A stretch of 64,000 nucleotides of DNA from NCBI RefSeq assembly GCF_037042905.1, contig NC_087246.1, forward strand, positions 33,914,001 to 33,978,000, given 5' to 3'. How positions within the stretch are numbered: the first letter of the stretch is position 1; every line of letters begins with the position of its first letter. The position numbers and the translations under genes were made by a program. Source of the stretch: Lytechinus pictus (lineage: Eukaryota). The notes under the pieces were generated by a model. It saw only the letters and a program-made list of their open reading frames with translations. It was not told the origin of the DNA and searched no databases. Of the stretch, positions 4,190 to 27,600 are shown piece by piece.

Positions 4190-4477
4190 TTACTTCGCAG
4201 TTTTGCCAAGATAAGCAACCTTTTGTACAAAGAAACGTGATGCTGACTTCTTGGGAAATATGAATTCTGAGTCTAGTAACTGGTCTAATTGTAATTTCAC
4301 TTCATCTATCCTTTTTCTTTTGTTAAGGTTCTGGTATGTTGATCTAAGAATTTCAATCTTATATTTGTATGCACTGCGAGAAGGTTTTTCCAATGCATCA
4401 TCTGATTTAATGACTTCATTAATGGCACCAGCTATTCCATGATTGTTAATTAGAGTAATCACTTCTCTATCCTTCAT
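4190..4477 (-). pseudogene. Short ORF, possibly the N-terminal remnant of a DNA-transposon protein
   Basis: 95-aa basic/helical ORF next to a TAGTAGGG terminus-like motif at 3785. No catalytic motif is visible. Confidence 0.3.
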
Positions 4478-5239: not shown

Positions 5240-5440
5240 ATCTCGGTTGGACAGGACGTTCGGTAGACGGTGCCCAGTGTACGCGATGATGAACAGTGAT
5301 GGCTGGTATGGAGTACTGAGTACGCGATGCATGATGACAAGACAGAGTACTGAGTACGCGATGCACGATGGCAAGTACAGAGTACCGAGTATGCGATGCA
5401 TGACGAACAGTACAGGGTGTGGCAGGCGTATCGGCAAGTG
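5240..5440. repeat. Short degenerate tandem repeat (~30 bp, GTACTGAGTACGCGATGCATGATG) inside the candidate LTR
   Basis: About 5 imperfect copies are visible; they explain the repetitive spurious ORFs at 5189-5493. Confidence 0.7.
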
Positions 5441-6148
5441 AAGACCGGCGAGCGAGATGAGTGTGGTGCAACTGAACTTGATTCATCCATCAAGACGTTC
5501 CTTATTCAGGATTGTCAATTGTTCTGCTGGATTGGTGACAATCCTTATTCACGGTATTTTAGACTTCCTTCTGCCGACTGCTGTAACTGTTGGCGACGTT
5601 CCTTATTCAGGATTGTCACTTGTCGAACCTCTCATTTCTGCTGCCGTCCAATATACTTTGTTTGAGCTTGCCCTCTCGATACTTCCAACGCCAGCCGATT
5701 TCGTCGTAGGGAAGGGGGGTCATATTCTTCCATGCACTATACAATAAAATCTACATCCACATTCTCATTTCAATCGACTTCTCTGACTTAAAAACAGTCT
5801 ACACCATTTTCAGAGACACATCATAAAATAACATCTGAATATTAATCTTACAACTACATAAAAATATTCATCTCGTCATTCAGGCTTCAAGCCTAAAATT
5901 TCTATAAAGAACTTCGAAATTCCAGTTCTGGCAAATTTAATTAAAAATTCCTTTTTATAGAGAAAGGGGGATATTATGTAACCTTAAGAAGTTTAAAAGA
6001 AATATTCCTCTCACTATTCTTGCCAAGGTCAAACGCTTGGACTATCAACTGTAAGAATGGACTAAAGAACAAACTCAACTGTCTTGGGGTTCCCTCTGAA
6101 CAAATACTCTCTAAGATGCAAAGTGAAGAAATTTTCACCCCCTGCCCC

Positions 6149-6234
6149 TTTTATACCCCTAGCTATCGGCCCCTATCGCCTGACAAAAACTTGACTTGCC
6201 CGCTTACGTGATTGGCCAAAAGTTTGTGACGTCA
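6149..6234 (-). promoter_or_regulatory. Pol II promoter cluster in LTR U3: CRE (TGACGTCA), CCAAT box, TATA box
   Basis: Minus-strand order is TGACGTCA 6227-6234, CCAAT 6211-6215, TATAAAA 6149-6155, with canonical spacing. Confidence 0.65.
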
Positions 6235-6703
6235 TCACCCACGAAATACAGACTGAACCATTTCCGGTAGGGAATAATCACTTCTAGTGACTAAAATAGG
6301 ATCAATTTATCATAATAGGGAAAAATAGAGCATCAAGATCCTCACTTCAAAGACATTTACAAGGTAAGTGACAATTTATCGAGAAAACTCGCTCCGTGCA
6401 TCGCCGTGCACGCCATTAACCTAACCTTGTCCCACGTACTAAATCCTATGTATTGCTGTGGTTCTAAGAATAGCACAATTCGCCTCTGTTACTATGCTCA
6501 TTGACTGCTGTAGTAAACACACTCAGCTGATTTTACTACGTTCATTCAAGATTCAAAACAAACAACAGCTGTGAGTGGTGGCATTGTATTAAAGTGAAAT
6601 TTTGAGAAGATTTTGTATAATTAATTCTGGCTGGAGGTAAGCACAGATCTAAATAGAAAATATTAAAAGAAAATTTTGAAAATTTTTTTGGGTATTCTTC
6701 ACA

Positions 6704-6716
6704 CTGCCCCCCTCTT
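6704..6716 (-). other. Polypurine tract (PPT)
   Basis: Minus strand AAGAGGGGGGCAG directly followed by TGTGAAG. Confidence 0.7.
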
Positions 6717-7050
6717 ACTAAATCGCTGTCCCAGCGATTCAATTTAAAACACTTACTAGGCCCTATTCCAAAATATACAAACTTTAACAGATTCAATCGA
6801 ATTAATTTCTTGAAACATTCAGATCTAAGAATGGAATACACAGTATCAATACAATTAAAATCGTTTCATCACTTCTTCAACAAATCATCTTACACTTTCA
6901 TTCACATGTATATACAAGGTAATAAGATGATCGCATCAACTCGGCTTCATCAGTCTCTTCGCATGTCATAATAGTTGGCTAGTAATGATAGACCATTCGA
7001 TGTCAAAATATGCTTGTAGAAAATTTGTACTCAAATTGTCAAATTAAAAG

Positions 7051-7849
7051 CTACTTCTGTTCATCGAAATGGTATACTGTCTTCTTTTCTTCATGTACCC
7101 TCCTCTCCCCGTAGGCTGTTACATAAGTAGTTGTGTACACCTCCACTTTATTTACTTGTATGTATCCTATCCGTGGCTTTTTCACCTTCAAGGTTATATC
7201 CACGTCCTCCTCAGTGGTTACCCTGAGTTCTCTCTTATGTGACGTGGAGTCCTCAGCCACCCCCTGACTAGATTCTCCTTGATGCATGGGGTCCTCTTCC
7301 TCCTCCTCAGGTTCTTCATCCCCAGAGTCCCCTGACTCTTCCTCCGAGCTCTCCTCTTCCTCTGCATGGAGGTCAAGTGCGTCCCTATTGTCTTTTTCTG
7401 TTTCCCCTGACTGTTCTTCCGTCTTCCTCCTCCTCCACAGGTACTTCCTCGAGCTTCTTCTCCTTCCTGTCCTCCTGTACCTCATCTTTCTTCTTTTCCT
7501 TCCTGTCCTCTCCTTCACGCTTTCTTTCCTTCCTGTCATCTTTATCTTCCTTCCTTTCCTTGCTCTCCCTTTCTGTCTTCTTTTCTTCCTCCCACTTGTC
7601 CCTTCTCCTCTCTCCTTCACGCTTCCTCAGATGTCCCGTCGTCGCCGCAGTGTAGTTTATATACTTCGCCTCTTGTTTTCTACTATTGTGCATCCTCCCA
7701 AAATGCCTGGTCATCTCCGACCTCCCCTCTGTCTCATATGAGCAATACGTGCATCTGAGGGTCATGGTGGCCTCGTGCTCCTGCATGTGTTGCTGGTACT
7801 TGTACCCCTTGATACTCTTTTTACAAATGTGACAGTACAAATAAGGCAT
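7051..7849 (-). pseudogene. Accessory retrotransposon ORF: 2x C2H2 zinc finger, E/K/R-rich region and acidic tail (frameshifted; the only copy with the full C-terminus)
   Basis: CHIC..HMQEH and CTYC..HFGRMH in ORF 7385-7849; the C-terminus lies in ORF 7051-7620, with a frameshift near 7420-7435. Confidence 0.7.
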
Positions 7850-10752
7850 AAGGTAGTTGTCATAAGTGCTTGTTAATCGTCAGACCTTATGAGCTTAATA
7901 TTTATATCTATTTGGCATCACCCTTTTCCTAGTAGGGTTTCTCCTTCCTGGATCAGACGTCAACCAATTTTTCAGTTTAGGACCAGTGTAGACTTTCAAG
8001 CGGTCAATGTGAATCACTTTGGGCTTACACCAGGGGTGTGAGCGTTCAGATTTTTTTTTTTTTCAGCTTATTTTTGGCCTTCCTCTGTACAAAAAGTATG
8101 GGAGCTCTTTCTATTTCAGACTTTTTCAACACTTCAGCTTTTTTCAGATCTTTTTATTTGTAACCACTCACACCCCTGGCTTACACGTATCTGATTGCTG
8201 TATGCGGTACACAACATCTGACAATCTTTCAATAACCATATATGGGCCACTCCATTTATACCGTCCATCAACTTTGGACACAACCTTCTTCTGCGCAGTA
8301 CTCCATGCAGCCAAACCCAATCACCCTCAGCAAATCTTCTTGGGAAAGTATTACGATCATAAGATATAGCCTGCTTTTCAGCAGCTAACTCAAGTTTCTC
8401 TCTAGCCATTTCATGTGCATCTCTAATTCTATCTCGAAGTTGCTCGGAATAATCCATTTCTCTCTTTCTTCCTGTCCTCCTGTACCTCATCTTTCTTCTT
8501 TTCCTTCCTGTCCTCTCTTTAACGCTTTCTTTCCTTCCTGTCATCTTTATCTTCCTTCCTTTCCTTGCTCTCCCTTTCTGTCTTCTTTTCTTCCTCCCAC
8601 TTGTGCCTTCTCCTCTCTCCTTCATGCTTCCTCAGATGCCCCGTCGTCGCCGCAGTGTAGTTGATATACTTCGCCTCTTGTTTTCTACTATTGTGCATCC
8701 TCCCGAAATGCCTGGTCATCTCCGACCTCCCCTCTGTCTCATATGAGCAATATGTGCATCTGAGGGTCATGGTGGCCTCGTGCTCCTGCATGTGTTGCTG
8801 GTACTTGTACCCCTTGATACTCTTTTTACAAATGTGACAGTACAAATGAGACATCTGCAGTGAAGAAAAGAAAACACAGGTAGTTGTAATAAGTGCAGGT
8901 TAACCGTTAGACCTTATGAGCTTAATCTTTGTATCTTTTTGGCATCACCCTTTTCCTAGCAGGGTTTCTCCTTCCTGGATTAGACATCAACCAATTTTTC
9001 AGTTCAGGACCAGTGTAGGCTTTCAAGCGGTCAATGTGAATCACTTTGGGCTTACACGTAGCTGATTGCTGTATGCGGTACATAACATCTGACTATCTAT
9101 CAATAAACATATATGGCCCACTCCATTTATACTGTACATCAACTTTGGACACACCCTTCTTCTGCGCTGTACTCCATGCAGCCAAACCCAATCACCCTCA
9201 GCAAATCTTCTTGGGAAAGTATTACGATCATAAGATATAGCCTGCTTTTCAGCAGCTAACTCAAGTTTCTCTCTAGCCATTTCATGTGCATCTCTAATTC
9301 TATCTCGAAGTTGCTCGGAATAATCCATTTCTCTCTTTCTTCCTGTCCTCCTGTACCTCATCTTTCTTCTTTTCCTTCCTGTCCTCTCCTTCACGCTTTC
9401 TTTCCTTCCTGTCATCTTTATCTTCTTTCCTTTCCTTGCTCTCCCTTTCTGTCTTCTTTTCTTCCTCCCACTTGTCCCTTCTCCTCTCTCCTTCACGCTT
9501 CCTCAGATGTCCCGTCGTCGCTGCAGTGTAGTTTATATACTTCGCCTCTTGTTTTCTACTATTGTGCATCCTCCCGAAATGCCTGGTCATCTCCGACCTC
9601 CCCTCTGTCTCATATGAGCAATATGTGCATCTGAGGGTCATGGTGGCCTCGTGCTCCTGCATGTGTTGCTGGTACTTGTACCCCTTGAAACTCTTTTTAC
9701 AAATGTGACAGTACAAATAAGGCAAATCTGCAGTGAAGAAAAGAAAACACAGGTAGTTGTAATAAATAGATGCAGGTTAACCGTTAGTCCTTATGAGCTT
9801 AATCTTTATATCTATTTGGCATCACCCTTTTCCTAGCAGGGTTTCTCCTTCCTTGATTAGACATCAACCAAATTTTCAGTATAGGACCAGTGTAGGCTTT
9901 CAAGCGGTCAATGTGAATCACTTTGGGCTTACACCAGGGGTGTGAGGGTTCAGATTTTTTTTTTTTTTCAGCTTATTTTTGGCCTTCCTCTGTACAAAAA
10001 GTATGGGAGCTCTTTCTATTTCAGACTTTTTCAACACTTCAGCTTTTTTCAGATCTTTTTATTTGTAACCACTCACACCCCTGGCTTACACGTATCTGAT
10101 TGCTGTATGCGGTACACAACATCTGACTATCTATCATTAAACATATATGGGCCACTCCATTTATACCGTCCATCAACTGTGGACACACCCTTCTTCTGCG
10201 CTGTACTCCATGCAGCCAAACCCAATCACCCTCAGCAAATCTTCTTGGGAAAGTATTACGATCATAAGATAAAGCCTGCTTTTCAGCAGCTAACTCAAGT
10301 TTCTCTCTAGCCATTTCATGTGCATCTCTAATTCTATCTCGAAGTTGCTCAGAAATAATCCGTTTCTTTCTTCCTGTCCTTCTCCTCTACCTCCTCTTTC
10401 TTCTTTTCCTTCCTGTCCTCTCCTTCACGCTTTCTTTCCTTCCTGTCATCTTTATCTTCCTTCCTTTCCTTGCTCTCCCTTTCTGTCTTCTTTTCTTCCT
10501 CCCACTTATCCCTTCTCTCTCCTTCACGCTTCCTCAGATGTCCCGTCGTTGCTGCAGTGTAGTTTATATACTTCGCCTCTTGTTTTCTACTATTGTGCAT
10601 CCTCCCAAAATGCCTGGTCATCTTCGACCTCCCCTCTGTCTCATATGAGCAATATGTGCATCTGAGGGTCATGGTGGCCTCGTGCTCCTGCATGTGTTGC
10701 TGGTACTTTGTACCCCTTGATACTCTTTTTACAAATGTGACAGTACAAATAA
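7440..10752 (-). repeat. Tandem array, segment 1: Gypsy integrase tail + C2H2 ORF units (~870-1020 bp)
   Basis: Zinc-finger starts at 7849, 8854, 9725 and ~10750. The integrase C-terminus (YSEQLRDRIRDAHEMARE..YD..FAEGDWVWL..PKL..WSGPY..HIDRLK) is repeated in each unit. Confidence 0.9.
8031..8178. mobile_element. hAT-type MITE (148 bp) in an array unit; the same insertion is at 9935-10083 and 27563-27707
   Basis: TIR CAGGGGTGTGAG/CTCACACCCCTG and 8-bp TSD GCTTACAC. Empty sites with a single GCTTACAC are at ~9050, ~26683 and ~47283. Confidence 0.9.
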
Positions 10753-10919
10753 GGTAGAGACTATATTGGCGTCGATCCGGCAGGTCATTAATATTCATGA
10801 GCTTGGAGATCTCGTTCGACCGCTGACGTTGCTCATTAATATTAATATTACGGTAACACATTGGGAATCGCGGGTGCGCCTCACCGCTTTACTGTATGTC
10901 GAGTGCAGTAACAAAATAT

Positions 10920-12061
10920 TTTCAATCCCCATTTATATCAATGTGCATAAAATAGGCGTCGATTCAGCATCTTTGGCGCTAATCCGGCAGTTTTTATGAA
11001 ATAAACCAAAATAATGACAATGAACCCAAATCAATGTGTTGGTTTGTCCAACTTGATGGAGCAGACAGCATATGGAGCTAGTAAAGCAGAAATCATTAGA
11101 GGAAAACGATTCACAACTTGTGTATTTTCAATATTCCCCATTTATATCAATGTACATAAAATAGGCGTCGATTCAGCATCTTTGGCGCTAATCCGGCAGT
11201 TTTTATGTAATAAACCAAAATAATGACAATGAACCCAAATCAAAGTGTTGGTTTGTCCAACTTGATGGAACAGACAGCACGGAGCTAGTAAAGTAGAAAT
11301 CATTAGAAGAAAAAGATTCACAACTTGTTTTTTTTCAATTCCCCATTAATATCAATGTGCATAAAATAGGCGTCGATTCAGCATCTTTGGCGCTAATCCG
11401 GCAGTTTTTATGAAATAAACCAAAATAATGACAATGAACCCAAATCAATGTGTTGGTTTGTCCAACTTGATGGAGCAGACAGCATATGGAGCTAGTAAAG
11501 TAGAAATCATTAGAGGAAAACGATTCACAACTTGTGTATTTTCAATATTCCCCATTTATATCAATGTACATAAAATAGGCGTCGATTCAGCATCTTTGGC
11601 GCTAATCCGGCAGTTTTTATGGAATAAACCAAAATGATGACAATGAACCCAAATCAATGTGTTGGTTTGTCCAACTTGATGGATAAGACAGCATGGAGCT
11701 AGTAAAGTAGAACTCATTAGAGGAAAAAGATTCACAACTTGTATAATTTCAATCCCCATTTATATCAATGTGCATAAAATAGGCGTCGATTCAGCATCTT
11801 TGGCGCTAATCCGGCAGTTTTTATGTAATAAACCAAAATAATGACAATGAACCCAAATCAATGTGTTGGTTTGTCCAACTTGATGGAACAGACAGCACGG
11901 AGCTAGTAAAGTAGAACTCATTAGAGGAAAAAGATTCACAACTTGTATAATTTCAATCCCCATTTATATCAATGTGCATAAAATAGGCGTCGATTCAGCA
12001 TCTTTGGCGCTAATCCGGCAGTTTTTATGTAATTAACCAAAATAATGACAATGAACCCAAT
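10920..12061. repeat. Subterminal tandem repeat of the MULE, ~5.6 x 204-209 bp
   Basis: ATGACAATGAACCC recurs at 11014, 11223, 11428, 11637, 11841 and 12045. Confidence 0.92.
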
Positions 12062-12175
12062 TCAAAGTGATTGCAAATTAACAAGGTTAACATTTTTCTT
12101 TTCTCAAAATATCACAACCCCTACAAGGAAAAAATCAAATCCAACAGACATTTTCCCGCAAAATAACAACGTCAT

Positions 12176-12659
12176 ACCCGGGGAAGGGGGGGGGTTGGGG
12201 CCCGTTACATTGACGAGTGGATACCATGCGCGACCAAAATACACGTAAAAAGGATGTCTTTTTCAAGATACGTGACGTGATAAGGGTGTAAAAAACACTA
12301 AAATAATGAAAAAAGGGTATCTATCTCGTTAGGAAAGTTACGTCGTGTTTAGGGTCAAATTTGCGGGGATGATAAAAATTAAAATGTTTCATAAAAGATG
12401 TCCTTTTCCCCAAAACATTATGTGTTTAGAGTCCGATTTGCTCGAGGTGTGGGGCCGGTGTGTAAAGGTAAAACCGACCACCGAATAAAATATCGCTGTA
12501 CTTGTTATTAAGGGGTTCATTTCAGGGATTACTTCCCAAGAGTATCGTTTTATTTCCAATAATTGTTTAGGGTAGGGTTTCACACGTCAATACTTGTTAA
12601 GGGGTGCATTTTCAGAATGGTATCCACTCGTCAATGGAAGTGCCCCCCCCCCCCCCCGG
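12176..12659. mobile_element. Non-autonomous element with CCGGGG/CCCCGG termini
   Basis: G-run and C-run ends, flanked by the direct repeat ACGTCAT (12169-12175, 12660-12666). Confidence 0.65.
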
Positions 12660-12815
12660 ACGTCATTCCATTTGAAGACGAGGGAGGAGGGGGACAGCCA
12701 GGAGTTGAGGACGGCGAAGAAATAGAAGAGGGAGAAAAGAAATCTTAACTAGAAGGGGAAAAATAGAATGAAAGAGAAAGAAAAATAATAAGGAATGAGA
12801 GGAAGGAGAAAGAAA

Positions 12816-13405
12816 CAAGTGGAATGCCTCTGGCCGTCTCACCTGCATCACGCGATTCAATATAGCAGCAGTGCTGATTTTGAAAACTACTATAACTCGC
12901 ACAAGATGTTCAGTGATACTTGGCTACTCTTATTTCCTCGTTTTATAAACTAGACTAATACACTTATAGAGATATGATGGTAATTCAACAAATACCCCCA
13001 ATTTGTCCAAAGTTCATTGACCCTAAATGACCTTTGACCTTGATCATGTGACCTGAAACTTGCACAGGATGTTCAGTAATACTTGATTACTATTATGTCC
13101 AAGTTTCATGAATCAGATCCATAAACTTTTAAAGTTATGATGGTAATTCAACAGATATCCCCAATTCGGCCAAAGTTCATTGACCCTAAATGACCTTTGA
13201 CCTTGGTCATGTGACGTGAAACTCATGCAGGATGTTCAGTGATACTTGATTAACCTCATGTATAAGTTTCATGAACTAGGTCCATATACTTTCTAAGTTA
13301 TGCTGTCATTTCAAAAACTTAACCTCGGGTTAAGATTTGGTGTTGAAGCCGCCGTCGCCGGAAAAGCGGCGCCTATAGTCTCACTCTGCTATGCAGGTGA
13401 GACAA
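12816..13405 (+). mobile_element. Helentron/DINE-1(HINE)-like element, same family as 232-1325
   Basis: Subterminal inverted repeat GTCTCACCTGCAT/ATGCAGGTGAGAC, terminal hairpin, internal ~160-bp TGACCTTTGACC units, inserted in an A-rich site. Confidence 0.7.
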
Positions 13406-16400
13406 TAAAAAGGAAACGAAAACATGTGGAGATGATAATTAATTTGAAGCTAACACTGCAGTGCTAAATGTGAACAAAATAACTTGGTCCAAAACACATC
13501 ACATAAACTCACAATACCATATCACATATTCATCTACCACTACAGGATGCATACCACTGAGACACGGGGGGGGGGGGGGGGGGGGGGACAATTTGAGTTT
13601 ATCAACATTTGAAAACACAGAACACAATGAAAACATATATTGTATTTACACACCTGAAACAGTGATTCAACATCATGTTTCATTTATTCATTTCATTCTT
13701 CAGCATCTTGAGAGTTTAACATAATTTATCTTATAATCACTTGCATCTTCATGAAAAATGAGAGAATATTTTAGCTCAGTTTTCACACATATTTCTCTAA
13801 GGGTAAATAATGTCTAATTTACACTGCTCTTTGTACAGTCTCCCACCCTGACAGTTGCCTGCACGACAATGCTGGTGATTCACACTTTGATAGGTTGGAG
13901 ATGATTGTGTATAAATGATAGTACATAGAATTTTGATCTCTGTTTTTTTATCGCTGTCAAATTAGTTAAATATCAAACTTGGCAATTGGTCCCCACTAAC
14001 CCATTGAATTCAACCTAGAAAGAAGAAATTTCACAGCAGTTTAGTCAAATACATTTGTACTAGTAAAAATGTCTTTATCATCTAAAATTTTGTAGGATTT
14101 ACCATAACTGTACACTATCCTCAACAGTTGGATCCTTATCATCTGATTTGTACATGTACAAGCAATGGGTCCACCATGTTTACACATTTGGTAGTATTTC
14201 TATTGTATACCCAGTGGTCACTTTGAGGGAATGTATGGTAAGAGTACAAAAGCTTTCATCTACTGGGTGGGCGTTTCATAAGGCTGTTCAAAAGATACAA
14301 TTGACTTTACAAATGACAGTGAAAGCTCTTGTGCAACCAGTATGATAAATGAGAATAATAGTACCAAAGAAAATACCCCCAGTTGTTCTTAAAGTAATTT
14401 GTAACTTACCAATAGTTTTGTGAGCCTCCCCGTCCATATTTCTCTCCTGGGCATGGAGTAGCAAATTAAAGTGCTCAATCATTTATTTATGACACCGCCA
14501 CACTGGTGTTAATGCGGATTAAGCATTTGTAAGTAATACTTTCCCCTTAAATTGATCAAATTTGTGTTACCATGGCAAGCGATAAAAAATCTTAAAAGAC
14601 CCACTCATTAATACTGTAAGTTGGAAAAATCATCACTTATACATTTTCAAGTTTCTTCATATTATATCCGTGTAATGCTTTACTTTCATCATAATTATTC
14701 TTCTTTCCTTTATTTGCTGCTACAGATATTCTTACAGAATCAAGAACGTGTGATTTTAAACTCGTCCAACATTTTCTTATCACATGTTTACATTTAATAA
14801 ATTACAAGCCAATCTGAAAGACTACTGGAATGACTATTTTTATTATGTGTTTTAGTTCTACAGTATTCACTCAGTGAAATGAATGTGTGGCTACACAGCA
14901 AATAAAGAAATCAGATAACGTACATTTTACTTCAAATTATGCCAGAAAATGTAGTATTCATATTAATCACATGATGGAAAAATCCTACAAAGTTAACAGA
15001 CATGTTTTAACTGGAATTATTTCAGAATAAGAAGAGCTTCATTGACACTAAAGATAAAACAATTTTGCAGTTTATTGACCACTTTACCAATTTGAGATTC
15101 CCATCACACTTTTCAAACATTTAAACTTTGTCATTATTCATGAAATTTTGTTAAAATTTTCAATAATCTGTTTCTCTGATTTTTTTGGTTTCCTTCAAAG
15201 TAATTTACAAGGGTTGGATTGCCCTTTAAACAATAATTCACTCGCCCTCTACCTTTAACCTCATATGATCAGAACTGTAGCCAAAGGTCAATAAAAATGC
15301 CTTCACTCATTCTTAAGCATTACTACATTAATGCAATATTTGACCAAAGTGTAATGGAATCTATTCATACCATCATTCTCCAAGTAATCATGGAAAGAAT
15401 AAGTGGGACAAACAGATGGACTGACAAACAAAATGCCCCCAGCAGGCCATCGCCTTTGTTGGCCGACGCATACAACATACTAGATTACATCATAAATTGT
15501 CTTAAAGAAGACCTTAACAGCGTAATTTCAAGGATTTAGAACAGTGCTCCAAAATTGGTATACCTATAAATAGTATATGGAAGCAAAGCCATGGCCTGTA
15601 TTAAAGATCATTCAATTTAGTTTATGAGAAAAATGTATTGTAACCAAATTCTCTCCAAGATAATCTGAACTCATCTTGGAGGCGTTTCACAAAGAGTGTT
15701 GGACTAAAATTGGTACTTGAATTCCCATTTGCATGTACAATATAACGCATCAGCTCATTGGTCAGATTATGCACAGGGTGAGTGTGCTACCAAGTATCCA
15801 TCAATGACACAAAGCGTTAAACAACATGTGCACGTTTGCGTCTAAGTTTGACTTTCAGTCACACTTAAATCTTTGTGTAACACCACTCTGGTGATATATG
15901 AATTACACAAACGTTTTCATTAAAAAATCAAATCTCCAGGATTGTTAAGACATCGCCATTAATTTTGAGGGTAAATAAAGAGCATTTTCTGGAAATAAAA
16001 AGCTCCATAATTCATTCAATTGTGCTCAAAATCATAAATAGAATTGTTTGCTTCACAATATGCATGGATGTCAAGGCATATAATTAAAAAAATGGAAATG
16101 TCATTATAGGTTTATAGATGCATTCTGTCTGTTCTGTTCGTATCACAATGAATCCATTTGCGATACATTTACATGCATTCATTGGAAACTGGAGTGGATT
16201 GGTCATTAGTACTTTTTCTTCACCTATATCATGAAAAGCAATGTCTCTGAGCACGACATTTAGGTAATTCTAACCAAACCAACATATTTCTCATTATTAT
16301 GAAGCAGTAATAGGCTAATGAAGAAAAAGATTGAAATTACTTCCATGCGATGTGTATCAAACTAAATAATTACGGAGGGTTGACCAAAATGGCCTCTCAT

Positions 16401-16614
16401 CCTGTGTATATCATAATCGTATAAATGTCATATCCGTGGCTAAAACCTTACAGGTATATAGCATAGTAAACAAAGTGTTGGCTGAGTTACAACCCCCTTA
16501 TCATGGACAAACAAATGACATAAAAGAAAGTAAATTATATCCATGCAATATGCAGGGAAATAATTAATTACAGGGGGTTAACCAGAATGGCCTCTCGTCC
16601 TGTTTAATGTCACT

Positions 16615-16914
16615 CTATTCATACTGTGCCCTGCAAATGGGGCACTCATAGTCTCCTTCTGGTGGCTTGGTTAAAGCGACGCACTGCAGATGCATCCACC
16701 TCCCACAAACATCACACTGGGTCCATGTATTAAACTTCTTTTGCACATTTCCTTTCGCACCTTTTCCAAGACACTCAAGCATGTCACAGACCTTTCTTTG
16801 ATTTACTGGTGCCACTGCGTGGCTCAGGAGAGCATTCCACACATATATGCGCATTGCTGCAGCATAATGTCCAACAGTAGGAGGATCTATTCCTTGTACC
16901 ACAGCTAGTGCATT
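16615..16914 (-). CDS. Last exon of the MULE gene: PHD finger
   Basis: CDMLEC..WTQCDVCGRWMHLQCV..YECPIC (C4HC3). Acceptor TTCTAG|AAT at 16914 is phase 0 and joins the Ulp1 exon in frame. Confidence 0.75.
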   Translation of the reverse strand, partial: NALAVVQGIDPPTVGHYAAAMRIYVWNALLSHAVAPVNQRKVCDMLECLGKGAKGNVQKKFNTWTQCDVCGRWMHLQCVALTKPPEGDYECPICRAQYE

Positions 16915-17324
16915 CTAGAAGAGAATGAATTAAAATATATTCCACATTAAAGTCATTGTTAGATCTTATTACATATATTGACCTTAAAGATAAACTTTAT
17001 TCTATTAATGAAATTTCATTACAAAATAAACTGGTTCAGGGCACTCACTAAATGTTAATTATACACTGCATTTTGTCTGCCTCTCCAATATTCCTCCCAG
17101 GCCCCTACAGCTCCACCTTTTTGTCAAGATCCATTAGACGGCCAACCTCAGCACCCATCAATATCCATGAGCAAAAATGGAAAATTGATTTTGTAAGATA
17201 ATTCAAAGGAGTACCCTGCATCTACTCAGGGTACTGAAAACAATGGGCAATAAATCATTAAATGCCTAATAATAGTTGCAACAAATGTGCATTAAATCAA
17301 AGCATCATAATGAAAGTGATAAGC

Positions 17325-18737
17325 CAAGGCTCCACATTAACTTTTTTTGGTGGTGGCCCGTTCGGGCCACCAAAACCATCAAATAATTTTTTTTGGTGGC
17401 CCGATATTAAAGTTTGGTGGCCCGAAAAATATAAAGAAAAACATTAAAAATGAATAAAACAAACTTCTGAATTTATTCTGCAGCCACTACCACTAAGTTC
17501 CTTTCACTTTATACATCTTAGTGTAGTAGGTTTCACGGTACACCATGTATCTTTCTTGGGCATATGTTGGTCCTGAAAAGGACCACCCAATCTCGACGTT
17601 TCGACAAGTGTGTTCTTGTCGTCCTCCTGAGGAGGAAGAAGCCATTACATATATTTTCAACAGCTGTGGCAACAGTCTATTCTGACTGGAATATAATTAA
17701 AAGCCAAGCATATAATTTTCACTTACCTTTTGGGAATGGCACATTTCTATTTTTATATCCTTTAGTTTGTATTATTTTATTTTCAGTAGAAACATATTTT
17801 TTAATCAGGCATATTCAATGGGAAGGGGTATAAATGGTTTAACCACTGTCAAAAAAAAATGAAAGAAAAAAAAAGAAAACGGAAAAAACTATATTGGAAA
17901 AAAAGTGTGAGAAAAGTCCTTCCCTATATTTGCCAAAATGTTGGGAAAAAAAATCACATTTCATATCAATGAAATGCCTTCCCAAAGTATTTACTTTCTC
18001 AAGAGTGGTTTAAGAAGTCATTTATAAACAAGAAAGAAAGAAACTGTCTGTTTGTTTAAGGCTAGAAAATACACAGCTTCGAAAGAAACCAAGTATCAAC
18101 ATACATACAAATGCACACGTGGGACTGTGATGTACTTGCCTATGTGTTTTTATGTGTATTAATTCATGTGGAAATCGGTCTTTTTTAGTCAAAAGAGAGG
18201 TCATAATTCCTCTTCTTAATACTTGCAAATAATCAGGGTACACCAGATTTTCGTAATATAGACTGTAGAATTTCATTTCATTGGTGTAAAAGGTGACTTT
18301 GACTTAGATTTTCAAAGTTCTGTGGAAGATTTCTCAGCAGCAACATTTTTTATCGCAGCTCCTCGAGTCTGAATAGGCTGAGCTGGATCTAGAGCACAGC
18401 TGTATGCAGTGGCTTCATGCAAAGCTCACGCCAGCCGGCCGGCGCGGCTGGCTGGATAATAGCTACTGTATGCTATAGCTGTAGGCCTAATATGCAAACT
18501 GTGTGTGTGTGTATTTGTGTGTAGATCAACAAAAAAGGCGCATGACGAACTGGCTTGCAATTTGAGCTGTAGAAAGTTGATAAATGCGTGCAAAATTGGG
18601 AGAAAAATTGCGCTACTTTGAAAATTATTGGTTGCCCGATTCGGGCCACCAAAACTTAACATTTTATCAATAATGGTTGCCCGAGGTGAATTTTTGGTGG
18701 CCCCGGGCCACCGGGCCACCGCTAATGTCGAGCCCTG
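17325..18737. mobile_element. Non-autonomous TIR element with 7-bp TSD (P/hAT-like CA..TG ends) in a MULE intron
   Basis: Imperfect TIR CAAGGCTCCACATTAAC / CAGGGCTCGACATTAGC, subterminal GGTGGCCC motifs, TSD GATAAGC (17318-17324, 18738-18744). Confidence 0.8.
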
Positions 18738-18873
18738 GATAAGCACAAGAAGTATGATTGCAATGATATCCGATGCTTAGGTTGGCCTTCAAATGATCTG
18801 AAAGAGGTGGGCCTAATGCCATTGGCGTAATGACATCTGTCCGTGCTGCATTTCATCTTGTAAGTTTATTTAA

Positions 18874-19472
18874 AGGACAAGTCCACCCCAACAAAAACTT
18901 GATTTGAATAAAAAGCGAAAAATTCAACAACCATAACACTGAAAATTTCATCAAAATTGGATGTAAAATAAGTTATGGCCTTTAAAGTTTCGCTTCATTT
19001 CACAAAACAGTTATATGCAAAATTGCATATCTCGGTCAGTATGCAAATGAGGAACTGATGACATCACTCTCTCACTATTTCTTTTGTATTTTATTATATG
19101 AAATATTTTTATTTTTCTCATCATTGTCATGTGAAATGAAGTTTCATTCCTCCCTGAACACGTGGAATTCCATTATTTTAACATTTTGTGCTTCAGGCAA
19201 GGAGGTCGAAATCGTCACATTCGTAAAAATTGAAATATTGTATAATTCAAACAATAAAAAACAAAAGAAATAATGAGTGAGTGACATCATCGACTCTCTC
19301 ATTGGGATGTAACTGGCTCGTTCATATAACTATTTTGTTAAAACTAAGCGAAACATTGAAATGTCATAACTTTCTAATTTTACATCCGATTTTGATTAAA
19401 TTTTAAGCATTGTTCTTGTCTGATTTTTCTCTATTGATTCAAATCAACATTTTTCTGAGGTGGACTTGACCT
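18874..19472. mobile_element. Kolobok-like MITE (TTAA target)
   Basis: TTAA|AGGACAAGTCCACC...GGTGGACTTGACCT|TTAA. Related copies are at 40637-41208, ~23179-23390 (partial) and 35629-43933 (split). Confidence 0.8.
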
Positions 19473-20243
19473 TTAATTTTCTATGATTCCTTTACTTATA
19501 TCCAGATAATTCTGGATCATCATGTGTCACTACAAGATTAAGATATCACTGACCTAGCTATGATGCATATATGCACTAGGTCTCATGAAACTGAAATTCA
19601 CAAGACTACATATCCCATCGCCCAATGACCTGTGACCTATGAACTTTAACCCCAAAATCTAAACAAGATTATTTATTCATGGTGATTCATTCTTGTGGTT
19701 TACTTATCATATATGAAAGCTAGATAATGTACATGAAATGAAAAGAAACAGAAATATAATTTATTTTGGGGGTATTTATATAGAAAGGGTTTGTCAGGCT
19801 CATGATATCTCCCAAGCACTTTACAAATTTATCATTATCATGGTCACAACTTAGCCATAAGAAATACACACATATTTTGTACCCATTTTGTACTTGGCAT
19901 GCAGAGAGTGCCAAATGTGGAGTTGCATCGTGCTATAGTATTCTAATGTAAAGGTAAAACATTAAGCTCTCAACCTTTCGATAGAAAGTGAAGTAAATAA
20001 ATGACTATACCGCAATATCTTGACATATTGCTATGGGGAAAGAAGAATTATGGAATTCAATGAAACCTAGTTTGCAACAAGTACTTGTCAGTTTGTTACA
20101 GCTGCTTAAAAAATCTACTACATGATAAAGGTTCAATATCAATTTCAGTTACGTTTTCTTCATTATAATTCAATTTACCTGACCTCTAATTGATGATTCA
20201 TTAGTATATCAAATAGATTAACTTTACAAAGTATTATTCTCAC

Positions 20244-20364
20244 CAGCATGACAAATGCCCCACAAGAATGACTATCTGTCTGCTTGGCAGATTTAAGATG
20301 CCCGATCGTCCATTCTTTGCCATGGAGGTCACCGGTTTCTATGCCTCTGTGTTGCATGTAGCTT
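20244..20364 (-). CDS. MULE gene exon with Ulp1/SENP (peptidase C48)-type catalytic Cys motif
   Basis: CAG| ...WTIGHLKSAKQTDSHSCGAFVML |GTGAGA; Q-x-D-x-x-S-C-G-x-F-V motif. Confidence 0.7.
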
Positions 20365-21621
20365 CTGTGATTATAAACAAACAGAAAAAGATAATTCTAC
20401 AAGCAGTACATTTTCATTTGGATGACATTAAGAAAAAAAGTACTGGGCAATTCCACAGGTTGGTGAAAAATTGCAAATTTAGCATTACAAATTTCAACTA
20501 TTCTTTTTTTGTCCTGCAAAAACCATGAAATTTGTGGAATCATATCAAAGTAAATCTGTTACCAATCTTTAAAATCTACAAAGTCAATGGACTCATAATT
20601 TGAGCCATTTTCTTGCTAAAAGTTTGAAAAGGGCTATGATGTAACAGTGCCTGTGGGGATAAACAACCTTGGAACATGTAAGATTTAAATAAAATTTGAT
20701 CTTCAATGTTCCACAAACCATGTTCCATTGTGGAAATACAAAACAAAACCAATATGCTGAAAGTTGTTAATGAAATCATTTTCATGTACAATATGAAACC
20801 TGATGCCTCAAAACCAATTAGTCACTAAATTTTTATTTTATTCTATTTTTATTTACTTCCATTTTATTACTATTATTATTTTTTTTTTTTGGGGGGTCGC
20901 TAATCTGAAACCCGAATTTCCAAGCTGTCAAATGATATATATAACACTTTCACTCAAGTTTACTAGAAATTATATAAAACTCATGCTGAAATATTATTTA
21001 CAGCTGTCAATGACATCTATATGCGGACATACTTTGTAACTCCTGTGTCAAGCTGCAATGGAAATATTACAATATATTGCAAATTCATAGGCACACACAT
21101 CTCACATTTCTCAGTTGTCTTTGTGCCATTGATCACCTAACATACTGCCAAACAACCTGAAAGGCATATCTTTGGGGCTAGGGATAGCAACTACTGATAC
21201 AGACAATTTATATGTCATGAAAATTTTGATAATTGCTGAAATCTTCAGCAAAATTTGAAATAAATCCCAGTTCAAGGGGGGGGGGCATGACACCATAAAC
21301 ACCATGCAGAATCTATTACTTTAATCTTATGTTGCCTCAATTGAGAGATGAATAGGTTATTTAGGGGCATTTCACTGTATATATATATATAAACCTGAAA
21401 ATGAGAAAGGCACATATCATATGTACATATATAATTATTTTCCAGGTGGAAAACCAAAACAATCGCATATATGTTTAGCAATAATCCTGATTTTTAGCCT
21501 ATATTTCAGAGACAAAAGCATTGAAAGTATGCAATATAAGATTCACATATATTCAACAAGTGGAAAAAAATTATAGAAAATGATATATTTCTATAAGAAA
21601 TATTTATGCATATAATTATAC

Positions 21622-24535
21622 CTTAAATTCAGGGAATCTCAGAACTTCTTTCATAAGTATTCTCGCCGGACATCCCTTCTTCCTTGATCCCTGAAGCCTC
21701 CTCCGTCTCTTCTTTGACCTTGGATGATCACTCTAAAATTGAAATTAAATAGAATACTGTATTAATTTTCATTCCAATTCAATAATTAAAACCATTACCA
21801 ATTCAATTTACAAAAAAATATGCCTATATTCATGTCACAAGCAGTGTGTTACGATGTGTCCATCATAACATAACAAACAAAATAACAAATGTCAACAGAT
21901 TCCTTTGGTTGGTTCAAATATATGTACATACCTAATTAGTGTATGGCTTCAGTAGTGATGATGTTAATGCTTTAGTGTTTAAAGCTTTGTATGTTCAGCG
22001 CATGTTCAGTTATAAATTTTCCAGTCATTTTTGTGTGTTCAGCTTTTAACATTGATAAATCATGTACTCATAATTTTCATGTGCTCGATTGTCCATTATA
22101 TAAACATGAATTTAGTTTGACATAATACTCTTTCAGCACCGCTTTGTTCGAATTACCCGATAGATATTTCATTTGTACATTATTAATGTTTTTGAGAACG
22201 ATACATCATTCTTCGTCTTCTTCTTAATATCATTATCATTCTTTTTCTTCTTCATTGTCTGTTCTTCTCCTTCGATTATTTCCCTTCTTCCTTTTTTCTT
22301 CTCCTCCCCTCCTCTTCACCTTTCAATGATTCCTTTGTAATATTTCATTGATGCTTCTGTTTATTCTAACAATTTTTTTTCATTTATTGTTCGCTCAAAA
22401 CTGCTTTTTTAACATTATATTATGTTCCACATGGCCCCAATAGCAATCAGTCTGTAAACTGTTTGGGCTTTTTAATCGTGTATAAATAAAATCAATCTTA
22501 TGTTATCTAATGAATACAGTTGCAGTCACGCTCAAACTTGTGTTGATTTTAGCACATTTTAACACATTTCCCCGAGTAAACAGTTGTCAAATTATAAGCC
22601 ATCTTTTTCACATCCCATATTAGTAGGCCTATACTTCTTTAAGCATACATGTAGGTCAACAAGAGCCCCTGGAGGCAGGATTTCACCCGGATTTCACAAT
22701 CTTCCCATTGGGCAGAGGCGTTCATCCCACCAATGAAAATATTGAGGGGGGGGCAAACATATCGGTTCCCCCCCAATAATTCTGCATGTTCTACTGAAAA
22801 CCTGTACAGAAAACCTTGCAGAATTATGAAAATGTTTTGCCAACATGTTCAATATTTTGTGTTCACACACACATTACTACCCCCACCCCCCTTAGACTTT
22901 GGACTTACCTTTAGTTCTTCCTCTCTAGCGGTTTTCTGTCTATAAGCAGCGCATTGGTTTTTATTGCGCCCATACATACAATTCATTTTGTATGTACCAA
23001 CATGAACAATGATGAAAGGCACTCCATCATCTGGAATTACTGATGACGATGTCTCACCTACATCATGAAACCTCACTAGGCCTAGATGGTTTACACCTTT
23101 GAAAGAAATAAAACAGTAATTATGAAATTGCTGCCTATTTGATAAGATTGACTTGGAAGCTGTAAATCATGAACTTAAAGGTCAAGTCCAGCTTAGAAAA
23201 AGTTTATTTGAATAAATAGACAAGAATCAAACTAGAATAACGCTAAAATTTTATCACATCAAATGTAGAATGATAAAGTTATGCCATATTAAAGTTTCGC
23301 TTAATTATTTTTCAAAAAACAGTTTAATGCTCAAAAAAGTGATATGCAAATAAGAAAATCGATGTCACTCACTATTTCTTCTATTTACTGCAGCGCTTCT
23401 CAACCTTTTTTTACTCGAGGACCACTTTGACTCTCAAATTTTTTTTGAGGCCCACGTATTATGTCAATGTAGATTATTCTCTGTAACCATGGAAACTGTT
23501 ATTAGATCCTAGTACAAAGATACTTGAAGGGGAAGATCGGACACTTCCACGATTTTTTGAAACGCCCGATAAATCCTTATTTAGGACGCCCATTAAGGGC
23601 GCCCACTTGAGTTGAGTAAGTAAACCCTCGCATATTATTGGCACGCGACAGTGTAAAACAATATATTTATGGGGAAAATGAGAGAAGGGAGTTTGGAGAC
23701 GGCTCAAGGGTGGCGCATGGAAATAATTCCACGTTTTATTTCCAAGAAACCTCAGAAAATATATTTATCTCAAATTGAAGGGGGAAATAATTGAGAAAAA
23801 AATTGAAATGTAAAAATCATCAATTCCTTCAACCCTTCACCATTTCTCTCAATATGTTTTGTAAGGTCAAAAAAGGTTGTTAGTTACTCAACACAGTAGC
23901 CTGTAGGGCACTCTTCTCGAGCATTTCATTACATGGTCTATGTACCGGTACTGTCCGATCTTCTGCTTGTAGTATCTTTGAATAGTAGTAGATCTAGATA
24001 TCTTTATTTAAGGCAAGTAGTACTAACGTAGTAGTAGTACCGTATGTGACACAGTCAATGAAAGACGACAGTTTTAACGTTACTCCCCTTTAACGTTAGG
24101 CCTAACAAAATGAAAATTCTTTAACAATCTGCTGCATGCATGCGATATTTCTGCAGAAAGTTCATAGAAAGTTCATGAAATGATAAAGTTCTTAATAGGC
24201 AAAGAGCTGCATTGTAAAGGCGGTAGAATAGTACATTTTAATCCAACCATTATAACTAACAAGTTGGGCATACCATTTTGAGGAACATCATCTAACGTTA
24301 GAGCATCCTTCTTAGCGTCAGGCCGAGGCCCCGGCTCGGTGGCATTGCCATTGTACCACTTGTAGAGATCGAGATGGAGTCCGAAGTTTGGGCTCTTCCT
24401 CTCGCCAACAAATTTACCCCTATCCACTTCATACAGTTTAATGAAATGTTCCGCTTCACCTAATGAAGAGACCCAACCATTAATATGTTGGTTTGGGTCC
24501 TCCCGAGACCATACATTCGTCCAGGAATCCTCCAT
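21622..24535 (-). CDS. MULE gene 5' exons (24274-24535, 22909-23096, 21622-21732): CaRF/ALS2CR8-like N-terminal domain
   Basis: GT-AG junctions with consistent phases (1, 0). The joined peptide contains IPDDGVPFII..CMYG..KKGCPARILMKEVLRFPEFK, which resembles the CaRF domain as I recall it. Confidence 0.7.
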
Positions 24536-24688
24536 GACGACAGTCGACGTGACAGAGTCTCACATGTCTCGCTCGATTCTAAATTGGCGCGCGTTTTATA
24601 CGTCATGAATATTCATGTCCGTATGCTACCGGCAGTTTACTCATGAATATTAATGACCTGCCGGATCGACGCCAATATAGTCTCTACC

Positions 24689-27600
24689 TACAAATAAGGC
24701 AAATCTGCAGTGAAGAAAAGAAAACACAGGTAGTTGTAATCAATAGATACAGGTTAACCGTTAGTCCTTATGAGCTTAATCTTTATATCTATTTGGCATC
24801 ACCCTTTTCCTAGCAGGGTTTCTCCTTCCTGGATTAGACAATTTTTCAGTTCAGGACCAGTGTAGGCTTTCAAGCAGTCAATGTGAATTTACTTTGGGCT
24901 TTAATGCAGGCTGCTGATTGCTGTATGCGGTACACAACATCTGACAATCTATCAATAAACATATATGGGCCACTTCATTTATACTGTACATCAACTTTGG
25001 ACACACCCTTCTTCTGCGCTGTACTCCATGCAGCCAAACCCAATCACCCTCAGCAAATCTTCTTGGGAAAGTATTATGATCATAAGATACATGTATAGCC
25101 TGCTTTTCAGCAGCTTACTCAAGTTTCTCTCTAGCCATTTCATGTGCATCTCTAATTCTATCTCGAAGTTGCTCGGAATAATCCGTTTCTCTCTTTCTTC
25201 CTGTCCTCCTGTACCTCATCTTTCTTCTTTTCCTTCCTGTCCTCCTCTCCTTCATGCTTTCTTTCCTTCCTGTCATCTTTATCTTCCTTCCTTTCCTTGC
25301 TCTCCCTTTCTGTCTTCTTTTCTTCCTCCCACTTGTCCCTTCTCTCTCCTTCACGCTTCCTCAGATGTCCCGTCGTCGCTGCAGTGTAGTTTATATACTT
25401 CGCCTCTTGTTTCCTACTATTGTGCATCCTCCCAAAATGCCTGGTCATCTCCGACCTCCCCTCTGTCTCATATGAGCAATACGTGCATCCGAGGGTCATG
25501 GTGGCCTCGTGCTCCTGCATGTGCTGCTGGTACTTGTACCCCTTGATACTCTTTTTACAAATGTGACAGTACAAATAAGGCATCTGCAGTGAAGAAAAGA
25601 AAACACAGGTAGTTGTCATAAGTGCTTGTTAATCGTCAGACCTTATGAGCTTGATCTTTGTATCTTTTTGGCATCACCTGTTTCCTAGCAGGGTTTCTCC
25701 TTCCTGGATTAGACATCAACCAAATTTTCAGTTCAGGACCAGTGTAGGCTTTCAAGCAGTCAATGTGAATCACTTTGGGCTTTAATACAGGCTGCTGATT
25801 GCTGTATGCAGTACACAACATCTGACAATAACCACTATCAATAACCATATATGGGCCACTCCATTTATACCGTACATCAACTTTGGACACACCCTTCTTC
25901 TGCGCTGTACTCCATGCAGCCAAACCCAATCACTCTCAGCAAATCTTCTTTGGGAAAGTATTATGTCATAAGATTTAGCCTGCTTTTCAGCAGCTAACTC
26001 CAGTTTCTCTCTAGCCATTTCATGTGCATCTCTAATTCTATCTCGAAGTTGCACGGAATAATCCGTTTCTCTCTTTCTTCTTGTCCTTCTCCTCTACCTC
26101 TTTCTTCTTTTCCTTCCTGTCCTCTCCATGCTTTCTTTCCTTCCTGTCCTCTCCTTCATGCTTTCTTTCCTTCCTGTCATCTTTATCTTCCTTCCTTTCC
26201 TTGCTCTCCCTTTCTGTCTTCTTTTCTTCCTCCCACTTGTCCCTTCTCTCTCCTTCACGCTTCCTCAGATGTCCCGTCGTCGCCGCAGTGTAGTTTATAT
26301 ACTTCGCCTCTTGTTTTCTACTATTGTGCATTCTCCCGAAATGCCTGGTCATCTCCGACCTCCCCTCTGTCTCATATGAGCAATACGTGCATCTGAGGGT
26401 CATGGTGGCCTCGTGCTCCTGCATGTGTTGCTGGTACTTGTACCCCTTGATACTCTTTTTACAAATGTGACAGTACAAATAAGACATCTGCAGTGAAGAA
26501 AAGAAAACACAGGTAGTTGTAATAAGTGCAGGTTAACCGTTAGACCTTATGAGCTTGATCTTTGTATCTTTTTGGCATCACCCTTTTCCTAGCAGGGTTT
26601 CTCCTTCCTGGATTAGACATCAACCAATTTTTCAGTTCAGGACCAGTGTAGGCTTTCAAGCGGTCAATGTGAATCACTTTGGGCTTACACGTAGCTGATT
26701 GCTGTATGCGGTACATAACATCTGACTATCTATCAATAAACATATATGGCCCACTCCATTTATACCGTCCATCAACTTTGGACACACCCTTCTTCTGCGC
26801 TGTACTCCATGCAGCCAAACCCAATCACCCACAGCAAATCTTCTTGGGAAAGTATTACGATCATAAGATATAGCCTGCTTTTCAGCAGCTAACTCAAGTT
26901 TCTCTCTAGCCATTTCATGTGCATCTCTAATTCTATCTCGAAGTTGCTCGGAATAATCCATTTCTCTCTTTCTTCCTGTCCTCCTGTACCTCATCTTTCT
27001 TCTTTTCCTTCCTGTCCATTCCTTCACGCTTTCTTTCCTTCCTGTCATCTTTATCTTCCTTCCTTTCCTTGCTCTCCCTTTCTGTCTTCTTTTCTTCCTC
27101 CCACTTGTCCCTTCTCTCTCCTTCACGCTTCCTCAGATGTCCCGTCGTCGCTGCAGTGTAGTTTATATACTTTGCCTCTTGTTTTCTACTATTGTGCATC
27201 CTCCCAAAATGCCTGGTCATCTCCGACCTCCCCTCTGTCTCATATGAGCAATACGTGCATCTGAGGGTCATGGTGGCCTCGTGCTCCTGCATGTGCTGCT
27301 GGTACTTGTACCCCTTGATACTCTTTTTACAAATGTGACAGTACAAATAAGACATTTGCAGTGAAGAAAAGAAAACACAGGTAGTTGTAATAAATAGATG
27401 CAGGTTAACCGTTAGTCCTTATGAGCTTAATCTTTATATCTATTTGGCATCACCCTTTTCCTAGCAGGGTTTCTCCTTCCTTGATTAGACATCAACCAAT
27501 TTTTCAGTTTAGGACCAGTGTAGGCTTTCAAGCGGTCAATGTGAATCACTTTGGGCTTACACCAGGGGTGTGAGGGTTCAGATTTTTTTTTTCAGCCTTT

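Follow-up and report, generated by a model that had tools for sequence, protein, structure and literature searches.

What kind of transposon possesses perfect inverted ends and a perfect target-site duplication (TSD), yet shows no catalytic core between them? This question is raised by an element in a 64-kb stretch of the genome of the sea urchin Lytechinus pictus (contig NC_087246.1), referred to here as the window, in whose coordinates all positions are given. A preliminary description of the window, made from its letters alone, had recognized a Mutator-like element (MULE) with an N-terminal domain resembling that of CaRF, a Ulp1 protease motif and a PHD finger. The element proper occupies 10753–24688, or about 13.9 kb, and the best answer, to which we assign a probability of roughly 0.9, is that it represents a non-autonomous MULE, produced by internal deletion of an autonomous element whose transposase gene encoded ALS2CR8, MULE DDE, SWIM, C48 and PHD domains in that order. 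The basis for this reading is that the two coding ends of the element are collinear with full-length proteins of such a family, and that about 875 residues between them are absent.

Termini, retained exons and the missing middle

The features on which the argument depends are given below; identities of individual exons refer to P0092, the closest full-length relative, a protein of 1203 aa from Lytechinus variegatus.

10744–10752, no strand: left TSD, TACAAATAA; same 9-mer at 24689–24697, and single copy in the paralogous empty sites
10753–10801, plus strand: left terminal inverted repeat (TIR), 49 bp, starting GGTAGAGACT; marks the element's 3′ end as the gene reads; pairs with the right TIR at 100% complementarity
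10916–12069, plus strand: subterminal minisatellite, 5.6 units of 204–207 bp, 94–95% matches (Tandem Repeats Finder, TRF)
16914–16618, minus strand, stop at 16617–16615: last exon, with the Ulp1/C48 C-terminal tail and the PHD finger; PF00628 match
20364–20244, minus strand: penultimate exon, with the Gln/Cys part of the Ulp1/C48 active site (..KQTDSHSCGAFVML); 48% identical to P0092 1059–1112 by tblastn
20365–21621, minus strand: interval with the internal deletion junction, replacing about 14 exons and about 18 kb of the L. variegatus gene
21732–21622, minus strand: exon 3, with a basic stretch like a nuclear localization signal (NLS) and the GCPA strand of the ALS2CR8 domain; 66% identical to P0092 147–184
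23096–22909, minus strand: exon 2, with the start of the ALS2CR8 domain; 44% identical to P0092 88–145
24535–24274, minus strand: exon 1, with its ATG at 24535, 105 bp inside the TIR; open from the ATG to a GT donor; 34% identical to P0092 8–83
24640–24688, minus strand: right TIR, 49 bp; 5′ end relative to the gene; inverted-repeat search
24689–24697, no strand: right TSD, TACAAATAA, equal to the left copy

The boundaries of the element are sharply defined. An inverted-repeat search returned arms at 10752–10801 and 24640–24689 that are 50 nt in length and 100% complementary, of which the 50th pair belongs to the TSD (its outer A/T), leaving true TIRs of 49 bp that are perfect. A 32-nt TIR probe, allowed up to 3 mismatches, found two sites only in the window, and both are ends of the element. 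The longest direct repeat flanking the element is the 9-bp TACAAATAA, a length within the range of roughly 9–11 bp typical of Mutator TSDs, and the TIRs are related to those of an Antedon element that encodes PF10551 (see below). The insertion lies in one unit of a host tandem array with units of approximately 0.9–1.2 kb, and the uninterrupted target, ...GTGACAGTACAAATAAGGCA..., occurs in 8 other array units of the window. Over the 58 bases compared, the reconstructed empty site does not differ from the unit at 9705. Since these 8 paralogous empty sites have a single copy of the target, the insertion and its 9-bp TSD are directly documented, bearing out the perfect ends and duplication that had been proposed at 10744–24697. 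The intactness of these ends suggests that the element was inserted fairly recently.

Between the TIRs lie five minus-strand exons, every one of which has canonical AG/GT splice sites. The phases of exons 1–3 agree and give 187 codons, including a KKRRRR stretch, and the final pair, spliced in phase 0, gives 139 residues across the junction ..KQTDSHSCGAFVML|NALAVVQG.... When compared with P0092, the spliced N-terminal part (187 aa) matches residues 20–182 with an E value of 2e-33 and the spliced C-terminal part (139 aa) matches residues 1067–1203 with an E value of 3e-49. Intron positions are also conserved with the P0092 locus, both at 85/145/184 and at CGAFVM|NALA (1101/1102), and the last exon is 49–54% identical to the C-termini of the two Lytechinus proteins. 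A word-based homologue search with exon 1 alone gave no matches, owing to its length filter.

The CaRF/ALS2CR8-like identity suggested for the N-terminus is supported over part of the domain by the Pfam model PF15299, which exon 3 matches at profile positions 54–89 with 36 bits (cutoff 28.9; E 8.9e-9) and exon 2 matches at positions 14–54 at a sub-cutoff level (E 3e-4). Coverage of the domain in the element thus amounts to profile positions 14–89 of 235, and the conserved His pair is absent. In the last exon, the PHD model PF00628 scores 24.9 bits against a cutoff of 24, and the ligands C-x4-C ... C-x2-C-x4-H-x2-C ... C-x2-C are legible; among relatives that have the domain, 7 of the 8 ligands are invariant, the exception being the leading Cys of the initial pair, which is weakly kept (4/16). 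The Ulp1 exon, when searched alone against Pfam, had no match, but alignment with the relatives places it at the C-terminal end of their Peptidase_C48 domain. Of the three profiles proposed beforehand, ALS2CR8 (over part of its length) and PHD gave matches directly, whereas the C48 assignment draws its support from the relatives. Of the His-Asp-Cys protease, the Gln/Cys segment and the C-terminal tail alone are left, and the His and Asp residues reside, in P0092, on the exon directly upstream of the Cys exon, which is missing here.

The extent of that loss is considerable. Matches between the window and P0092 fall at residues 8–83, 88–145, 147–184, 1059–1112 and 1102–1203 with none in between, so that about 875 residues (P0092 185–1058) have no counterpart in six frames of the 64-kb window, and tblastn gave no match to these residues there. 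A family hidden Markov model (HMM) of 31 sequences and 1026 positions, run with filters off (--max) against all stop-to-stop pieces in six frames of the whole window, matched at positions 20–62, 65–100, 888–950 and 933–1024 only; no match to positions 101–887, and hence to the DDE core, was obtained in any frame. The earlier impression that no catalytic core is visible accordingly holds for the whole window, and the suggestion that the DDE exons were deleted is supported, since about 14 exons lack a counterpart. In all, the middle three quarters of the transposase gene are gone, with the first three and the last two exons kept. The lost parts are the C-terminal half of the ALS2CR8 domain, in which two nearly invariant His residues of a C..C..H..H pattern lie, the whole DDE core, SWIM, and the protease His and Asp. 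The MULE/IS256-type DDE core that an autonomous Mutator member would encode is thus lacking. Independent contigs of sequencing run X1 span 20278–22271 with 0–3 differences, which argues against a collapse of the assembly at the deletion.

The deletion also left its mark on the reading frame. Exon 3 ends in phase 0 at 21622, and the exon at 20364 requires two preceding bases (phase 2), precisely the mismatch that had been pointed out. A direct splice from exon 3 to 20364 adds KLHATQRHRNR and then meets a stop at codon 199. The in-frame Ulp1-Cys and PHD C-terminus of the preliminary description is consequently real across the last two exons, and in frame nowhere else. The most that the element could itself encode is a fragment of 198 aa, which would be non-functional because both His zinc ligands are missing from it, together with the DDE core and the protease His and Asp.

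Full-length relatives and the elements around them

The nature of the missing middle is evident from complete members of the family. When the last exon was searched with phmmer against 1.84 billion representative proteins, 91 matches were returned, 23 of them at E<=1e-10. The long matches among these, from Antedon (P0010, 939 aa) and Apostichopus (P0021, 781 aa), possess the MULE transposase domain PF10551, a ZSWIM1-3 RNaseH-like domain, Peptidase_C48 and PHD. A search with P0010 in turn produced 99 animal proteins, whose hosts include echinoderms, Ciona, amphioxus, amphibians, fish, molluscs, a brachiopod, a priapulid, cnidarians and insects. Almost every one of the 99 has ALS2CR8 plus MULE (plus SWIM), and a subset also has C48 and PHD; the order ALS2CR8-MULE-C48-PHD is fused alike in echinoderms, tunicates, molluscs, cnidarians and amphioxus. 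In P0092, for example, ALS2CR8 spans residues 105–306, MULE 391–482, SWIM 682–714, C48 965–1115 and PHD 1153–1198; PF21056 is present as well, and the DDE, C48 and PHD residues are intact.

Catalytic residues are well preserved throughout the family, with the three DDE positions kept in 31/31, 30/31 and 30/31 relatives, CxxH in 31/31, and the C48 His, Asp and Cys largely retained where that domain occurs. An AlphaFold (AF2) model of the relatives' core, with a mean predicted local distance difference test (pLDDT) score of 91.8, matches the Arabidopsis FAR1/FHY3/FRS proteins with template modelling (TM) scores of 0.66–0.72, and it also matches vertebrate ZSWIM1/3/9, Kluyveromyces lactis alpha3 and bacterial IS256-family transposases. 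A single full-length relative was found from L. pictus itself, P0093, which is 46% identical to P0092. Because it is only about 55% identical to the exons of the element, P0093 belongs to another subfamily, and several subfamilies coexist.

Some of these genes still lie within recognizable transposons. The Ciona intestinalis gene for P0102 is found in a 14.3-kb element (locus L002, 5277–19612) with a 9-bp TSD, TTAAATCAG, termini reading GGTAGATACT, and ends built of a 51-bp repeat in inverted arrays of kilobase length. The Ciona element looks intact, encodes a full ALS2CR8–MULE–SWIM–C48–PHD protein and has a 63-bp minisatellite just 3′ of the gene. In Antedon mediterranea, the gene for P0010 resides in an element of about 13.2 kb (locus L004, ~4287–17510) with a 10-bp TSD, TTATGTTTTC, and with 69-bp subterminal arrays that reiterate the element's own TIR-core motif. 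In both Ciona and Antedon, the transposase gene is the sole gene called between the TIRs.

Likeness to the L. pictus element extends to the ends. The first 10 nt of its TIR agree with the terminus of the Ciona element at 9/10 positions, and, in the window as in the Ciona locus, GGTAGAnACT is confined to the termini. The Antedon and L. pictus TIRs are identical at 34/49 positions (69%) in an ungapped alignment, a likeness that stops at the inner edge of the L. pictus TIR, and the Antedon and sea-urchin proteins are approximately 44% identical in their C-terminal part. Such similarity of the TIRs could reflect either strong constraint on a binding site or shared ancestry younger than the split of the hosts.

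The L. variegatus gene for P0092 is a multi-exon gene of 24.5 kb (L001:10001–34534). Its start lies less than 300 bp from a UBA3-like neighbour, and the sequence up to 10 kb from the gene showed neither TIRs nor GGTAGA termini; this gene may be an old immobilised or domesticated copy. No clean termini were found at an amphioxus locus (L003).

Probable mode of transposition, competing explanations and nested repeats

The design of the Ciona and Antedon elements recurs in the L. pictus copy on a reduced scale. The minisatellite adjoins the inner side of the TIR at the 3′ end of the gene, and each of its units carries the TIR core GGCGTCGAT...CCGGCAG with the two halves 20 bp apart. In the 64-kb window, GGCGTCGAT and CCGGCAG occur 8 and 9 times, respectively, and all occurrences are within the element, in the TIRs and the minisatellite. 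Judging from this arrangement, the minisatellite probably consists of reiterated transposase-binding sites. The ancestor was most likely an autonomous element with a single multi-exon gene, encoding an ALS2CR8/CaRF-type (FAR1-like) DNA-binding domain, a MULE/IS256-type DDE domain, SWIM, Ulp1 (C48) and PHD. The present copy may have lost the middle of this gene through abortive (interrupted) gap repair, the usual deletion route in DNA transposons. It would have been moved by a cut-and-paste mechanism, a full-length member of the family providing the transposase in trans, and products of its own would be without function.

Several considerations tell against this account of a mobilised deletion derivative. 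No full-length copy with matching TIRs could be demonstrated in the L. pictus genome, from which the only full-length relative found, P0093, is of another subfamily. The dating as "recent" draws on the identity of all 98 TIR bases, on the perfect TSD and on the retained exons being open, rather than on polymorphism. Recognition of the GGCGTCGAT/CCGGCAG motifs of the TIRs and minisatellite by the ALS2CR8 domain of the full-length enzyme is a conjectural step. Finally, expression was gauged from three stranded L. pictus RNA-seq runs, of which about 6% of each was sampled; here exons 2 and 3 and the Ulp1 exon had essentially zero reads, and the junction check that had been suggested at the outset came back empty, with no splice joints of the element's gene in any of the runs. 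One run (X21) yielded approximately 8–10x reads on exon 1 alone (24290–24689). These reads differ from the window in a fixed manner, with A>G at 24422 in 8/8 and a 1-nt deletion at 24329 in 6/8, and so derive from another copy or allele. Transcription of another copy or allele of the element's 5′ end is thus seen in run X21.

Might the truncated gene nonetheless have been retained because its short product is useful? An NLS-bearing N-terminal fragment could conceivably compete with or regulate the full-length transposase, after the model of the P-element KP or type-II repressors. Open exons 1–3 with 187 codons, an intact ATG and splice sites, the KKRRRR stretch and the few RNA reads over exon 1 in one run are all in keeping with this idea. 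However, the fragment ends at ALS2CR8 position 89 of 235, without the two nearly invariant His residues, which makes folding or DNA binding unlikely; exons 2 and 3 and the Ulp1 exon are essentially unread, and the exon-1 reads come from elsewhere. Youth alone predicts open exons equally well, and we consider a retained repressor quite improbable. The preliminary description had gone further by proposing that a deSUMOylase coupled to a histone reader could counter silencing. That proposal is inapplicable to this copy because of the absent protease His and Asp, the frameshift after exon 3 and the lack of detectable transcription in the sampled runs.

It is less probable still that the element is a Pack-MULE or chimera, in which fragments of a CaRF-like gene and of a SENP/PHD gene were captured between MULE ends. 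In favour of this, CaRF is a vertebrate host gene, and the 24.5-kb P0092 gene has no TIRs detected within 10 kb. Against this, both fragments come from one family that fuses ALS2CR8, MULE, C48 and PHD in the same order, the introns are conserved with the full-length gene, and in Ciona and Antedon that gene alone lies between the TIRs. The exons match the termini of a multi-copy MULE family with order, orientation and introns kept, and do not match a non-mobile host gene. Lowest in our estimation stands the idea that the element is autonomous and belongs to a different superfamily (Zisupton/KDZ, hAT or P), its catalytic domain being too divergent to detect. Zisupton elements can carry Ulp1, and the flanking repeat would measure 7–8 bp if the outer A/T pair were counted as TIR, but the maximal flanking direct repeat is 9 bp. 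The relatives, moreover, have PF10551 MULE/PF21056 plus SWIM rather than KDZ or hAT domains, their core folds like FAR1 and IS256, and the sensitive family HMM found no core in the window.

Other sequences have accumulated within the non-autonomous MULE itself, where foreign sequence consists of satellite and miniature inverted-repeat transposable element (MITE) repeats only.

12187–12657, no strand: nested MITE-like insertion with 41-bp inverted ends; inverted-repeat search
12808–13408, no strand: nested or captured 163-bp satellite; TRF
18869–19477, no strand: nested high-copy repeat, intronic; 72–77% identical to 40633–41213

The L. variegatus locus L001 contains a repeat with 78% identity to the MITE-like insertion. 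Further copies of the 163-bp satellite, 79–91% identical, are found at 236–1332 of the window and at L001:1487–2601; the satellite is thus common to L. pictus and L. variegatus, with one array sitting within the transposon. The intronic repeat at 18869–19477 has a second, partial copy at 23175–23386. Its RNA-seq and contig coverage is very deep on both strands, with many opposite-strand joints, which suggests that this repeat (also 23175–23386 and 40633–41213) belongs to a foldback or MITE-like family transcribed genome-wide.

The host array in which the element landed has units at 7000–10750, 24700–27400 and ~46800–48000. The open reading frame (ORF) of the array unit begins M[PS]YLYCHICKKSIKGYKYQQHMQEH... 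and encodes a C2H2-like finger (Pfam zf-H2C2_5, E 2e-5, sub-cutoff) followed by a long Lys/Glu/Arg tail. Beside the ORF is a fragment like the C-terminus of a retroelement integrase (..GDWVWLHGVQRRRR..). Insertion of the element split codons 3–5 of one such ORF.

The CaRF connection and known Mutator systems

CaRF is a neuronal calcium-responsive transcription factor whose DNA-binding domain was previously without known relatives. At the level of the family, this domain also forms the N-terminal part of a Mutator transposase that is widespread among animals. The Pfam ALS2CR8 model matches the MULE-bearing relatives with E values of 1e-34 to 1e-39, and an AlphaFold model of their ALS2CR8 domain (pLDDT 82.9) has as its top matches the human, rat, cow and mouse CaRF proteins (E ~1e-12). 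Arabidopsis FRS10/5/11 follow with their FAR1 DNA-binding domains, and weaker matches go to K. lactis alpha3 and yeast Aft2. A Foldseek search of this model against the Protein Data Bank (PDB) gave nothing meaningful, and a word-based search with the ALS2CR8 region of P0092 gave two proteins and no CaRF sequence. The link between CaRF and a mobile lineage that had been drawn from the L. pictus copy is therefore sustained at the family level, where relatives carry the full ALS2CR8 domain and members lie in TIR-bounded elements with 9–10-bp TSDs.

How much of the transposase might CaRF have kept? Among the 30 best Swiss-Prot matches to the model of the MULE core, CaRF is absent, and it therefore appears to share the DNA-binding module only; retention of a transposase core by CaRF is not claimed. 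Descent from transposon to host is what the fold type and the taxonomic breadth of the family would imply. We would give even odds to the fuller proposition that vertebrate CaRF is a domesticated DNA-binding module of an ancient, still mobile animal MULE clade, in which ALS2CR8 reads the TIR and subterminal motifs, the TIR being still recognizably alike in a crinoid (Antedon) and an echinoid element. Domestication of this kind would parallel that of FAR1/FHY3 in plants. A literature search for papers linking ALS2CR8/CaRF to a transposase, MULE or ZSWIM found none. The family offers a testable origin for CaRF, and its natural full-length elements allow the roles of Ulp1 and PHD in transposition to be assayed. 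Its wider value lies in a pan-metazoan Mutator clade whose transposase has a CaRF domain first and a SUMO-type protease and PHD finger last, with intact elements in Ciona and Antedon.

Several known systems share one or another of these features. FAR1/FHY3 and ZSWIM1/3/9 are domesticated MULE transposases whose fold is shared by the relatives' core; those proteins, like CaRF, are products of immobile host genes. The plant KI-MULEs (Kaonashi) and the Ulp1 MULEs of Arabidopsis, melon and rice combine Mutator-like ends with Ulp1-like sequence, as does the element described here. In plants, the Ulp1-like gene is separate or captured, often in elements without a transposase, whereas in the relatives reported here Ulp1 is fused in frame to the transposase and followed by PHD. 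The Zisupton (KDZ) elements are likewise large animal DNA transposons, some of which carry Ulp1. They have a KDZ-type transposase and an 8-bp TSD, unlike the present family with its MULE domain and the present element with its TSD of 9 bp.

Closer resemblances exist within Mutator itself. Rehavkus, a MuDR-related group (Kapitonov & Jurka, Repbase), is defined by a 9-bp TSD, a PHD finger and a minisatellite that precedes the 3′ TIR (summarised in Dupeyron et al. 2019, PMC6446971), and all three features are found in the L. pictus element, a likeness at the level of described features. Rehavkus is reported from arthropods and annelids only, with Ulp1 unmentioned (PMC6446971), whereas the present element is echinoid and retains a Ulp1 piece. 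The nearest counterparts are the Repbase MuDR-type families of Hydra and Branchiostoma. Ulp1 was described in Mutator transposons of hydra and lancelet, and the Ulp1 and PHD of "Mutator TPases" were aligned (Bao, Kapitonov & Jurka 2010, PMC2836005); these animal Mutators have a C-terminal Ulp1 and then PHD, as in the relatives found here, and in the portion of that paper available to us the ALS2CR8/CaRF identity of the N-terminal domain receives no mention. Hydra and amphioxus proteins with ALS2CR8+MULE+C48(+PHD) are indeed among the relatives recovered. The combination of Ulp1 and PHD in animal Mutator transposases was thus already known, and the locus is an ordinary non-autonomous copy that differs from the Hydra and Branchiostoma families as an internal-deletion derivative, without a DDE core and in an echinoid host. 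Its value is that of a clean, well-bounded example, in which the TSD is perfect, the deletion is mapped and empty sites are available as paralogues.

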